DNA from: Macrostomum lignano
Lineage: Eukaryota
Assembly (NCBI GenBank): GCA_002269645.1
Contig: NIVC01003886.1
Location: 1-64,000 of the forward strand
DNA length: 64,000 nt
Reading direction: 5' to 3'
The notes beneath the pieces were generated by a model. It had not been told where the DNA came from. It did no database searches and was given only the letters and a program-made list of their open reading frames with translations. Numbering within the stretch: position 1 is the stretch's first letter; each line of letters starts with the position of its first letter. A program made the translations under genes and the position numbers. This document shows, in pieces, positions 23,901 to 29,900 of this stretch.

Positions 23901-26900
23901 ATACCATTTCGGAACTTTTCAAAGAACATGCAGACGCAATTTTATATATAGTACATTCGGTTAGATTTTTTAGTCTGGTAAAAGACTTTCTGGGATCAGC
24001 AGCAATGCCCCGGTGTTTTAAAATTTATTTAGCTAAACTAGATTAGTCGTGTCGGTAAAAGTGAATCTAATGCCGTGAACTTAAAGGATAATTGGTAAAA
24101 CTTGTTTAATAGTTGAAATATAACCAATCACGCACGATTAGCAATGAATACCGTACCTTAGATAATCTAGCAAACGGTTTTTCCATAATGGTAACGCTAC
24201 CATCAAAATCTTTTGTTTTTCTATTTCATTAATGCTACCATATCTGATATTTTTTTCCTTTTAATCAGTGTTTAATTAGTATTAAGGAAGGCCAGAGAGA
24301 ATTTAGGTAGTTTAGGGAGCCAAAAAAATCTCACAGATTTTACGAGTAATACAGACTGCAGTGCAGTTCCAACATTTAGCTTGGCATTAAAACCAGTTGG
24401 AAGCAGTTCCAAATCGCGAAATAAATGGGCGCACGAGTCTCGACACAGCGGACGTAAACAGCGGGTAGAAAGCTTGCATTTACGTTATAGTGCTAAATTG
24501 TTAGAAATTATAAAAAAACAATAGCTTAATGTTATTATTTAAAACCAATCGCGTGTAAACCAATCGCGTGTTCCTCTCAGATACAGGTTTCTATTACGGG
24601 ATCATATTGTGCCCCATTTCTCACCGTTCATTTCAACAGGTTTATAATTATATTTTTGTGTTATAATTAAAAAAATCATCAGACGGTTTTGATGAAAAAA
24701 TTTGAAGGGCACGAACAAAGCTTTGTACTTTAGTTACACGTTTAGTGCAACGCCATATTGACTTGTCAAAAAACTAACAAAATTTGACCGTATCCGAGGC
24801 AGAAACTGTGCTGCCATGCGACTGGAACGCGGCAGGACTGAACAAATCACTAAACTACGCGCGAACAAAACAAGCAAAACTTGGCAAACCGTAAATTGCG
24901 ACCGATATTTTTGCTAGAAACAATTTTCTAGTTGAAAAAATATCTCGGTGCTATTTCTTAATTTAGCTTACGACTTCGAAAAAGGCTAATTCGTAATATT
25001 CATAGCACTTTGTAATATTTTTATAACTTACCTTAACAACAAATAAAATGTGGATTAAATCACTTAAACATATTTAAGTGGGAACTCTTACAACATAAGT
25101 TTCTAATGCTCATGCACGGAGTTCTCATCATAACTATGCTTTTAAAAGCAATTCTGGCTGCATATACTTGCAGTAAGAGAAAGTAGTGACACAATCTAGG
25201 GGACCCCTAAAAGTAAAAATGTAGACTTGAAATTATGTACGAGCGTATATAATAAAAGTATACAACAACTTCCAGTTGTTACTATTTCTGCGGGTAGCGG
25301 GACAAACATGTACGCTTATGAGTTTAAGAGACTTTCAATTTTGCAGAAGAAAATATTTTAACATTCGTTCAAACGAAAAATATGATGAATCAATTAGGAT
25401 AATCCGAAATTCTAGTACTTGTAAATGTACTCGTAAAACTATATTTTTATTCATTTGACCACAGTTGACATTACACAGTTACCTCATAATGTATTCCGTT
25501 ACCACTCTACATGTATTGTACATGTAGTAGCCGCCAAAAATCTCTAATAAAATTTATCTAATATATCCAACTAAAAGTACTCTTTAAGGTGAGCTTAAAA
25601 ATAAAAAAACAACACAAAACTAATGGATATTCTACAAAATCAAAGTTAACATGTTACCTGTTATGTGTGGCACTGTACTCAGTAAAAAGGAAAATTATGA
25701 AAATAAAATATAATATTGCGTAAGTAATTGGAATTGATTATTTTTAGTTGGATTTATCATGTATCAACTGCAGTTAATTAGTTACTCAAGTTTCTTTTAG
25801 TTACGGGACTCGTTCCACATGCATATTTTTAACTTGATAATTCTCCGTAGAACAAAACGTCTAAACTTGATAGAACTTTTTAAATTTTCTATACGTCTAT
25901 ATTGGATAAAGTAGCCTAATGCGTAAGTTTATTCTGTTAGTAGGTATTTTAGCACTTAGCTATACTGTATAGGTACCTAAATTCTCATTCATAAAAGAAG
26001 ATACAAAGTGCAAAGGAATAAACTCTGCTCAGTATTTTTCTCAAGTAGTCTTGAAGGATAAAGTTTAAAGATGCTTGTGCTCTTCATTGGCATATAGACA
26101 GACACAAAAAAGATAGTTAACTAAATCCATAAAAATGAATAATAACCAGAACCTAAAAAGCGCGTACCCTCGTCGTGTTCCTCTGCAGGCTGGTGAAAAA
26201 GCGCCGGTTCGTAACCAGCCAAAGTGCAGACCGCCTGGCCCATCAGAGGAAATCTCTCTCTAGCGGTCCGTCGTCTCTGCTCCTCGGCCGTGACCTCCTT
26301 GGCCATGAGCTCCTCCTGTTGCTTCCGCCTAGTAGTGGAGGCCGTTACAAACGTCTTGGCCACTTCGTCCTGCTTCAATTGGACCTCTTCTACGGACTGC
26401 TTGACCCGCGGCATCCACGGTGGATCCGGGATGTTTGCGTTTACGCTGCCCAGCGGCGGTGACGGCAGCACAAACTCGATGTTTGGTGGCGGAATTTTAA
26501 AATTCGATGCTGCGCCGTCCTCTAGACGAAGCCAAACCTGAATGAAATTTTTAATTCGGAGCCGAATGCATTCTTACATATTTTTCGCACAAAAATTAGT
26601 AGTATTATTTTTTGCTATGGTAAGTACTGTCGACATAGTCAAATATCAACTCGTTGATCACTTTGACAAAAAACGATCTTTCCTATACATTCTCAGTATA
26701 GTGAGGAAGTGACTGATGAAACGGCTGTCCGAGAAGAAGGGCGCTAGGACACCGACGGTTGATCAAATTTGAGGCGACTTGTTTTATTAGCGAATAAACT
26801 AACTTTGGTATTAAATTGATTTCATCTTTCGGAACTGATTGAGTGTTCACTCAGAGGATGAAGTGAACCCGAGTTTGAGCTCATTTACAGGGATATATAT

Positions 26901-29900
26901 TTACTCGGTAATTTTTCAGCCCTTTTGCTTTCACTTATGAGATTTGTGCCCACATCAAACTGTCCATATAGAATGAAGTCATACCTGAAAACGCGACATC
27001 CACAAGCTGCGAAATCTCAGTACAGCATTCATCCTCTGCTGAACATCATCGTGCTGCAGTTCGCGCACCATCAATTCTTGTACTTGGTCGGGAATTCGTA
27101 CAGCCGCCAAGAGAAATACAGTGGCTGCTGAGGTTGCTAGTTCGATATCAGCTTCTAAAAGCAGTTCCCAGGCAACTGGCATGATGTCGCACCAGTGATC
27201 CGTACCTGTTGTATATGATTTGAATGTTTACGTATAATAATTCTATCTAAAATAATCCTGGAATCTGTCCTACACTCAAATAGAGCTAAATAATTAAATT
27301 CACCTTTCTAACATTTCTAAATGCACAGTCTGGTGTTCATGTGAACATAATTGCTAGAAGTTAGAAATTTACAACCATTCTCGTTGCCTGTCTCTATAAT
27401 TGCAGTAATCTTTAGCTACTAATGCTGAAAAAATCATGGAATACTCACCTAGCAGTGTGCAAGACTTGCAAATAACCGAGAACGATGCCTGGGTCAGCTG
27501 CAAAACGTGATCGTCCATGTATCGCATCATCGCTTGATCAACCGTTGGTTTCCTAGCGCCCTTCTTTTCAGGCTTCTCTTTCTCGTGCAGTCGTTTCTGC
27601 AATGCGGCCGGGTCTAGCTTGGTGAGTAGCGGCGTGCTGTCTCGAGTACCCAAGCGACCGGGCGATGCTCCGGTAGCCGCTGCGGGGAACATGCTGCGCC
27701 TTCGAAAGATGCTGTACTTTTTATCCCCGGCATACTCGGCGCTGTCCTTCTCGGCAGAGGCTTCCGGATCAGTGTCGTCTGGCGGCGAATCACCGTAGAC
27801 TCGACGGAAAGCGTTTAGTAAGCGTCTGCACTGACGTTGTTGACGTTCGAAGCAGTTCGGATGGCAGAAACCCTTGTAGAAGTAGATAAAAAACTCATTA
27901 AAATGTATAGCTAGTGAAGCGTCATTTAAACTTGCTGTTGTATTCATGAAGTTAACAACATCACTATCATTCTTTTCCACTAGACTATAGCGAGAAACAA
28001 ATTTAATGTGGTGTGGCTTTGTGCAGTGATTTGGTCTACTAGTGCTTTTCCTAGATGAACAATTGACACCCTTGACCCTCTTTTTGGGGTTAAATGCAAA
28101 GTACATGTATATCTGGCCACTCTGGTCGTAGGCGACTGACCCTATTTAAATTCCCGCACAAAATCAATCGAAACAAAAATACAACATTACCTGATGCTCG
28201 CAAACGAAATTAGTTCGATTTGCAAACGCCGTGACAGCTTTCAGCCAGGGAAAATAGGTGCACAACGAGTCATCGTCCCACAGTTCGCTAGCTCCGGCTT
28301 CATCGCCGCTGCTGTCGCCTCCGATGCCGCCAACGTCGCCAGCAGCGCCACCAACGCCAGAACCACCGACACCTAGGCCTGAGTAGGCAGCCTGTTGCTC
28401 TCCACTCGCACCAGACATTGTGCTCACTTTGCGCTGCTTTAAGCTGCCAAGAGCGTGGCGAATTGAACTGCCGAGCTGCGCGACTAAAGAAATTTGGTTT
28501 TTGGGTTGGAAGGTAGAATTCAGATGCAGTGAAATGTCAAACCACCTGTTTTACAGGAGGGCGTAACTGGCCTAGAGGTGGATTAATCCTGATGAGCGGT
28601 TGGAAAGATAAAAGAATCTCTCAGAAGAAATTATTGATCCCCGAAAAACGCATAACGAGAAGCCTTAAAATAAATAATGTATTACATGTAAATCTAAGAG
28701 GCTAAATACGAGCAAAAACGTAAGTATGACTGAATAGTTTAAATGAATTCCAGTCTTTGCTTTTTGGATTGTGGTACTTGCTCAATCAATGTGCTCAAAA
28801 ACTCACAGCGAACTTGGAATTTACAACTCAGCGCGCTTTGAAAATGTAAGAAGAAACTGCCCGTAGTATTTTACCCAAACAGGGGCTTCTGGATGTTGCC
28901 CCAAATTAAAGCGACACTCGACCAACAAATATAAAGAAATCAAGTAGTTATTACTCATTTCACTGATAAGGAAACTTTCGCGGGAACACACTCATTAGCA
29001 GTATTCCCAGGCCCTATTAGGTGTGGACCAAAAAAGCGAAACTAAACAACTTTACGCCACGATTCAATCCGCTACTTTCACACCCCTTGCAATATTAAAG
29101 GCTACAACAACGCACAACCCGCAACCACTCACTGCTGTCGCGTTTCTTTCTACCCAAGCGACTGCTGGCCCTGCGTGGGAACATGCTGCGCCTTCGAAAG
29201 ATGCTGTACTTTTTATCCCCGGCATACTCGGCTGTCCTTCTCGGCAGAGGCTTCCGGATCAGTGTCGTCTGATGACAAAGAATCGTTAAAACGACACTGA
29301 CGTTAAAGCTTCGTTTAATTAGTAAGCGGATCGGCATGACTAGTTCGAAAAATTTGCTATAGAAGTAGAAAAAGTTATCAAAAGCGTCATTTAAACTTAC
29401 TGTCGTATTAACGATGTAAACAACATCACTACTCTTATCATTTTTTTTCGCTAGACTATCGCTAGAAAAAAATAATGTGGTGTGGCTTTGTGCAGTGATT
29501 TGGTCTACTAGTGCTCTTCTTAGACGAACAATTGACACCCTTGACCCTCTTTTTGGGGTTAAATGCAAAGTACATGTATATCTGGCCACTCTGGTCGTAG
29601 GTGACTGACCCTATTTAAATTCCCGCACAGTATCAATCAAAACAAAAATACAAGATTACCTGATGCTCGCAAACGAAATTAGTTCGATTTGCAAACGCCG
29701 TGACAGCTTTCAGCCAGGGAAAATAGGTGCACAACGAGTCATCGTCCCACAGTTCGCTAGCTCCGGCTTCATCGCCGCTGCTGTCGCCTCCGATGCCGCC
29801 AACGTCGCCAGCAGCGCCACCAACGCCAGAACCACCGACACCTAAGCCCGAGTAGGCAGCCTGTTGCTCTCCACTCGCACCAGACATTGTGCTCATTTTG

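Follow-up and report, generated by a model that had tools for sequence, protein, structure and literature searches.

An inverted copy of a UNC80 exon in a downstream intron of Macrostomum lignano: a predicted exon-intron duplex and plausible incidental ADAR substrate

Main finding

The DNA studied here is a stretch of 64,000 nucleotides of the flatworm Macrostomum lignano (GenBank assembly GCA_002269645.1, contig NIVC01003886.1, positions 1 to 64,000), hereafter called the window, whose minus strand carries the unc80 gene. UNC80 is a scaffold of the NALCN sodium-leak channel and is recoded in mammals and flies through ADARs, the adenosine deaminases that act on RNA. In the middle of intron 14 of this gene lies a 49-nt inverted copy of part of exon 13, and the unspliced transcript is predicted to fold the two arms into a stable duplex. 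An earlier note, made from the letters of this DNA alone, had proposed the intron arm as an independent editing-complementary sequence (ECS). The structural part of that proposal was supported, in the form of a predicted 44-bp helix that joins an exon to an intron downstream of it; selection for recoding is judged unlikely. The reading favoured here, for which we regard the balance as about even, is that the intron arm is a young and probably unselected 'proto-ECS', a short inverted copy predicted to pair with its source exon and a plausible incidental substrate of ADAR.

The unc80 gene and the inverted copy of exon 13

The gene was identified from its central region on the minus strand (Pfam PF19424, E 5.6e-104; positions 403-705). 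It extends on this strand from the N-terminal domain at ~54.2 kb to the C-terminal domain at ~9.7 kb. The best database protein match was from M. lignano, a free-living flatworm, and was 100% identical, and all remaining matches were flatworm proteins with ~50% identity; an insect source, at first suggested by the style of the introns, was rejected on these grounds. Splice junctions were read from the sequence and agreed with the M. lignano UniProt protein model P0001. The GC profile fitted the resulting splice map, with exons at 50-67% GC and introns at 28-39%. Exons are numbered as in the earlier note. Exon 13 lies at 27449-~27866 (start approximate) and ends at the 5' splice site CTAG/GTGAGT (27449/27448). 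It is followed on the minus strand by intron 13 (27206-27448, 243 nt), by exon 14 (26985-27205, 221 nt), whose junctions LLG/TDHW and SRFQ/VWLR match P0001, and by intron 14 (26538-26984, 447 nt).

The exon arm comprises 64 nt of exon 13 (27534-27597, minus strand), 85 nt upstream of the 5' splice site of that exon; it encodes (Q)KRLHEKEKPEKKGARKPTVDQ in a frame that matches P0001. The intron arm, which is the candidate ECS, is the 49-nt inverted copy at 26718-26766. On the minus-strand transcript, 218 nt separate it from the donor of intron 14 and 180 nt from the acceptor, and it forms a GC bump within an otherwise AT-rich intron. In the sense of the gene, the exon arm reads GAAACGACTGCACGAGAA[AGAGAAGCCTGAAAA]GAAGGGCGCTAGGAAACCAACGGTTGATCAA, the middle block being without counterpart in the copy, and the copy reads GAAACGGCTGTCCGAGAA-GAAGGGCGCTAGGACACCGACGGTTGATCAA. 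A repeat search and a direct alignment reproduced both the coordinates and the match that had been described, with identities of 15/18 and 29/31 on either side of a 15-nt exonic bulge. In a blastn search of the 36-nt core against the window the match had an E value of 1e-6 to 1e-7, and the inverted copy is far beyond chance.

The two arms differ at five positions, which would give the RNA mismatches A27591·C, C27587·A, A27586·G, A27550·G and A27546·C. Two of the differences are silent (CGA/CGG and CCA/CCG) and three are amino-acid-changing on the copy (CAC/TCC, H>S; AAA/ACA, K>T). The 15 nt that the copy lacks are in frame and fall within a K/E-rich low-complexity stretch. In the register of the minimum free energy (MFE) structure this bulge (AAGAGAAGCCUGAAA) lies at 27566-27580 on the minus strand; it has no counterpart in the intron arm, and the register is ambiguous by a few nucleotides. 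Long-range pair probabilities are low in the bulge. Synonymous changes and an in-frame gap among the differences had been given as grounds for regarding the segment as an old inverted exon fragment, and both were found.

Two small features of the arms were also recorded. Both contain the 8-nt perfect palindrome TTGATCAA (27534-27541 and 26759-26766), and the homology of the arms stops exactly there; the palindrome is a possible template-switch point of the copying event. The intron copy keeps the reading frame of the exon on the plus strand and is preceded by an ATG, so giving an 18-codon open reading frame (ORF) at 26716-26772 (MKRLSEKKGARTPTVDQI and stop), which is almost certainly coincidental.

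An all-inverted-self-match scan of the window returned about seven local pairs, and among them that formed by 26718-26766 and 27534-27597 alone has an arm within a coding exon. The impression, originally gained by eye, that other exons have no such inverted copy was borne out, as the scan of the window showed no other exon-intron inverted pair in UNC80. Further copies of either duplex arm were absent from the 64 kb. A second copy considered at 45591-45639 (-43.4 kcal/mol) was rejected as CT-rich low-complexity sequence pairing with the GA-rich exon arm. The exon-intron pair does not qualify as a transposon-derived hairpin, of the kind made by miniature inverted-repeat transposable elements (MITEs) or terminal inverted repeats, as one of its arms is a conserved UNC80 coding exon. 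No known structured RNA was found at the locus, where the search of Rfam gave a single sub-threshold chance match.

Predicted duplex in the unspliced transcript

The two arms were paired with RNAduplex, which gave an energy of -70.6 kcal/mol. The background, obtained from 9136 windows of the same transcript, had a mean of -17.4 kcal/mol (standard deviation 5.6); the best unrelated window reached -43.4 kcal/mol, and shuffled arms did no better than -40.7. When 931 nt of the pre-mRNA were folded (z = -2.66), the long-range helix was present in both the MFE and the centroid structures. Pair probabilities from the partition function were 0.95-1.0 along the helix, with or without intron 13. The folding that the earlier note had advised thus kept the helix that it had postulated, an exon-intron duplex across ~770 nt that loops out exon 14. 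The measured span is 767 nt; looped out are the last part of exon 13, then intron 13 and exon 14, and finally 218 nt at the start of intron 14.

The helix has 44 bp, arranged in blocks of 6, 3 and 5 and then of 15, 3 and 12, and is interrupted by the five mismatches and the exonic bulge. Its perfect core of 15 bp lies at 27551-27565 on the minus strand (5'-AGAAGGGCGCUAGGA-3'), with pair probabilities of 0.74-1.0. An ECS pairs intramolecularly with an exon over at least about 15-20 bp, and in silico a double-stranded RNA (dsRNA) of this kind is found here. These computations predict a stable duplex of exon and intron in unspliced unc80 RNA.

Editing potential of the exon arm

ADARs disfavour a G or a C 5' of the target adenosine and favour a 5' U or A and a 3' G, with the adenosine in an A·C mismatch or an A-U pair. 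Among the adenosines of the exon arm, the best sequence context is that of A27554, which is favourable: it has U on its 5' side and G on its 3' side (UAG), lies in an A-U pair of the perfect core with a pair probability of 1.0, and is the first base of an AGG codon. Inosine at this position would recode AGG (Arg) to GGG (Gly), and A27554 is the best candidate site on the modelled structure. A T is likewise enriched before edited A in planarians (PMC8797187). The suggestion that neighbouring AAA, AAG, ACG, GAT and CAA codons could be recoded held in so far as the exon arm offers such positions, in AAG/AAA (Lys), ACG (Thr), GAU (Asp) and CAA (Gln) codons; the most promising one on the model is the AGG codon at A27554, outside that list.

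The two A·C mismatches of the duplex had been put forward as a sign of site-selective editing. They are located where they had been placed and are both silent: A27591 is opposite C26724 at the third position of CGA with a 5' G, and A27546 is opposite C26754 at the third position of CCA with a 5' C. A transition in one arm of a perfect duplex gives either G·U or A·C, and half of all transitions give A·C. The A·C mismatches therefore carry little weight as an editing signal, being an ordinary product of transitions, silent and next to disfavoured 5' neighbours. As to the mismatches as a whole, four of five fall on an exonic A (P = 0.066 under random placement, not significant). The mismatch pattern was considered as a signal of selection and rejected, since it is not significant in either direction.

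The following course of events is proposed. About 50-65 nt of exon 13 of UNC80 would have been copied in reverse orientation into intron 14 in the Macrostomum lineage, most likely through templated insertion of local sequence while DNA was being repaired or replicated. The unspliced transcript would then fold the 44-bp imperfect helix, with its perfect stretches of 15 and 12 bp, its five mismatches and its 15-nt bulge. This helix would last as long as intron 14 is still present, irrespective of any earlier splicing of intron 13. Where ADAR is present, the intron arm would act as an ECS, and adenosines of the exon arm would be deaminated before splicing. Recoding would most likely fall on A27554, turning Arg (AGG) into Gly, and on the Lys, Thr and Gln codons that flank it, both A·C sites being silent. 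The analysis establishes the copy and its non-random nature, the gene, its splice map and the helix as a prediction; the way in which the copy arose, formation of the helix in vivo and all of the editing are inferred.

Origin of the copy

In the 30 nt flanking the arms, ungapped identity was 10/30 and 6/30, which is random, vs ~90% within the arms. Gapped alignment of flanks of 30-150 nt gave no residual homology better than that of shuffles. A longer, once-extended duplication with selective retention of the arm was rejected, as the flanks are without homology. The abrupt end of homology at both arm edges indicates that the copy was short from birth (~50-65 nt) and is not an island of a large decayed inversion, which removes one possible argument for selection.

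The arms have diverged at 5 of 49 positions (10%), plus an indel. This resembles the 13% of a tandem duplication of 1.5 kb which lies next to the arms and gives the locus a history of local duplication. The similar divergence of the two fits a neutral origin of the inverted copy, and the differences between the arms would match accumulation in a constrained exon and a free intron copy. The alternative that the earlier note had itself offered, an inverted exon fragment, explains the origin well in view of the sharp edges, the lack of wobble-preserving changes and the divergence shared with the tandem duplication. That the arm began as a duplicate does not preclude its acting as an ECS.

Template switching and alternative end-joining give short templated insertions, some of them inverted. 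The features of such a local inverted insertion (a short, nearby, inverted copy with abrupt edges) are found here in a copy of 49 nt with 90% identity and a donor 767 nt away, and local templated insertion is most likely the way in which the copy arose, as judged from the sequences of the arms and flanks. The likeness to these insertions lies in the small size (~50-65 nt), the donor at less than 1 kb, the inverted orientation and the sharp edges. Unlike in those systems, no clear junction microhomology beyond a TG dinucleotide was seen; dating or polarising the event would require an outgroup.

The tandem duplication itself is direct and of ~1.5 kb (27680-29151 and 29171-30576), with 86.6% identity and many indels, and is situated immediately upstream in the gene. 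It takes in UNC80 exon 12, the intron and, of exon 13, the 5' half. The exon-12-like ORF of the upstream copy is still open, but its exon-13 part is frame-broken, as in a pseudo-exon. P0001 appears to start within or around the duplication and omits part of exon 13.

Comparison with known editing substrates

Exon/downstream-intron ECS pairs are known from the Q/R and R/G sites of GRIA2, from HTR2C and from Drosophila ion-channel genes. The principle is that the exon pairs with a complementary sequence of the downstream intron (PMC10404624). The M. lignano duplex resembles these substrates in being an imperfect helix of a few tens of base pairs between a coding exon and a downstream intron, which must form before splicing, and in having mismatches and bulges, A·C included. 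It differs from them in that the element lies in the next-but-one intron, so that a whole intron and an exon are looped out, in that the arm can still be recognised as a recent copy of the exon itself and is no conserved intronic element, in that the A·C sites are silent, and in that the substrate is predicted only.

Mammalian Unc80, named in the earlier note as a conserved recoding target, was rightly so described: mouse Unc80 undergoes ADAR2-dependent Ser2732Gly recoding that is conserved among mammals (PMC11172567). The mouse and flatworm cases share the gene family of this neuronal channel scaffold and a loop- or linker-like segment. They differ in position, as the mouse site is residue 2732 of 3267 and thus C-terminal, whereas the flatworm duplex is in the central region (PF19424); the regions are therefore not homologous, and any editing in the flatworm would be independent. 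In Drosophila, unc80 has several 'highly conserved' nonsynonymous sites (Glu>Gly, Gln>Arg and others) (PMC6369821). The fly case is alike in concerning the same gene and an invertebrate neuronal transcript with multiple recoding sites, and unlike in that its sites are validated and conserved across Drosophila, whereas the flatworm site is predicted only. Unc80 is edited independently in mouse and fly, so that neuronal UNC80 pre-mRNA can be reached by ADAR in animals other than the flatworm.

Within the flatworms, the planarian Schmidtea mediterranea has two brain-enriched ADARs, which carry a double-stranded RNA-binding domain and the deaminase motif CHAE; when its ADAR2 is knocked down, 240 A-to-I sites are lost, and 27 of these are recoding (PMC8797187). 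This system belongs to the same phylum as M. lignano, and to the Tricladida rather than the Macrostomorpha. It also differs in that most of the planarian sites were analysed on mature transcripts and not on exon-intron duplexes.

Weighing of the explanations

Several results weigh against incidental editing of the duplex. None of the three transitions between the arms (0/3) preserves pairing as G·U (P about 0.2-0.5, not significant), and the mismatch pattern agrees with neutral decay. Editing could be forestalled if the 447-nt intron 14 is spliced out fast during transcription. A search with the deaminase domain of human ADAR2 gave 881 matches, of which the best 120 were all from vertebrates, insects, molluscs or cnidarians. 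An older survey credited flatworms with no true ADAR1 or ADAR2 orthologues (PMC3167634). In the planarian the 240 sites are the transcriptome-wide total, so that editing is sparse, and unc80 and NALCN are absent from the edited transcripts reported there (PMC8797187). A literature search found no published work on RNA editing in Macrostomum. A homeologous or sister-species unc80 locus was not found by exact-product look-ups with P0001 and the exon-13 and exon-14 ORFs or by a degenerate-pattern scan of metagenome contigs.

In the main rival explanation, the same short inverted templated copy is an inert relic under neutral decay, its helix forming too late or remaining unedited above noise. Its sharp boundaries with unrelated flanks, its divergence of 10% plus an indel, close to the 13% of the adjacent tandem duplication in a duplication-prone locus, and the changes of nonsynonymous type that it carries (H>S, K>T), as expected of an unconstrained copy, all agree with this, as do the lack of G·U-preserving substitutions and the sparse editing in the one flatworm studied. 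What speaks against inertness is the helix itself, which with 44 bp, -70 kcal/mol and pair probabilities of at least 0.95 surpasses many validated ADAR substrates in length and stability. Beyond a length of ~20-30 bp, essentially all dsRNA that is accessible in the nucleus is edited by ADARs, so that total inertness needs either absent or low ADAR in the cells that express unc80 or very fast splicing. We consider an inert relic a serious possibility, though a somewhat doubtful one. Were the intron arm instead kept by selection for site-selective recoding of UNC80, this would be a third independent acquisition after mammals and flies. The classical architecture of exon and downstream intron, the placing of four of the five mismatches on exonic adenosines, the UAG context at an Arg codon and the precedent in the other two groups are in keeping with such a function. 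Yet the copy retains ~90% identity with its source and has sharp edges, a sign of recent birth and not of long maintenance; the A·C sites are silent with poor 5' neighbours; the exon arm encodes a K/E-rich linker that is poorly conserved in comparison with P0002; and the region is not homologous to that of the mouse S2732G site. Selection for recoding is accordingly thought improbable.

An effect on splicing is very improbable. The helix would in that case promote skipping of exon 14, giving a frameshifted and unproductive isoform, or back-splicing into a circular RNA. Between the arms there do lie intron 13, exon 14 and the 5' portion of intron 14, and inverted-repeat stem-loops around exons are reported to promote loop-out skipping in the case of inverted Alu pairs (PMC13019027). 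With those Alu pairs and with the intronic complements that drive circular RNAs, the present pair has in common that an internal exon with its splice sites is enclosed by two complementary arms. It is unlike them in that one M. lignano arm is exonic, that the pair is not transposon-derived and that the skipped product is out of frame: the 221 nt of exon 14 are not a multiple of 3, so that skipping would shift the reading frame of the conserved UNC80 central region. An assembly artefact, in which the intronic segment would be a chimeric or misplaced read-derived insertion, is scarcely credible. Repeats and duplications abound in the M. lignano genome, and a 1.5 kb tandem duplication is nearby; against this, the surrounding exons match an independent protein model at 100% identity, and the copy is set apart from its source by five substitutions and a 15-nt gap, which a chimeric read would not bring about and which make a mis-assembly unlikely.

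The favoured reading of the arm as a proto-ECS has a bolder form, to which we give only a small chance: a newborn ECS, in which a one-step inverted insertion gave a functional ADAR recoding substrate (for example Arg>Gly at A27554 and Lys>Arg/Glu nearby). The origin of ECS elements is poorly documented, and a bounded, recognisable inverted copy of an exon would be a clean case of the birth of a duplex in one step. If true, the newborn ECS would provide a concrete mechanism for how such elements arise, and UNC80 recoding would have evolved independently in three phyla. More generally, should a basal flatworm have an editing substrate of independent origin here, this would point to recurrent recruitment of editing to the NALCN complex. 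M. lignano is a laboratory model amenable to RNA interference, for which sequencing data have already been generated. Without editing, the copy would simply add another neutral local duplication to a genome that is very prone to them, and on present evidence the exon-intron duplex is not remarkable.

Other repeats in the window

Five of the remaining inverted pairs (B to F) are wholly non-coding, MITE-like single-pair hairpins of 185-1050 nt in UNC80 introns. Two of them, 37001-37053/37350-37402 and 61785-61818/62003-62037, have arms of 53 and 35 nt that are 85-89% complementary and 297 and 185 nt apart. The arms of both start with a shared TATACC(T/G)TT motif; the common TATACC terminus gives the two hairpins a MITE-like appearance, and they are probably MITEs of one family. 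The inverted pairs 34459-34517/35007-35072, 35618-35682/36204-36272 and 37445-37479/38525-38559, also non-coding and in UNC80 introns, have 72-83% identity, stops in all frames and no further copies in the window.

Pair A (2646-2770/3264-3388) is a 125-nt inverted repeat with 82% identity downstream of the 3' end of UNC80. One of its arms lies in an ORF of 138 amino acids on the minus strand (3016-3429) with weak, sub-threshold helix-turn-helix matches (HTH_29/23/28) of transposase-like character, and pair A is likely a DNA-transposon remnant.

Tandem repeats were also recorded. Microsatellites of the type (GATA)n/(TAGA)n occur at 47181-47499 (80 copies) and 59317-59754 (110 copies), in UNC80 introns or upstream. 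Minisatellites were found at 60592-61091, 63207-63675, 40768-40983 and 17540-17680, with periods of 34, 33, 23/46 and 24/72 nt and ~15, 14, 5 and 5 copies, respectively. The 33-nt array gives rise to a long repetitive ORF on the minus strand.

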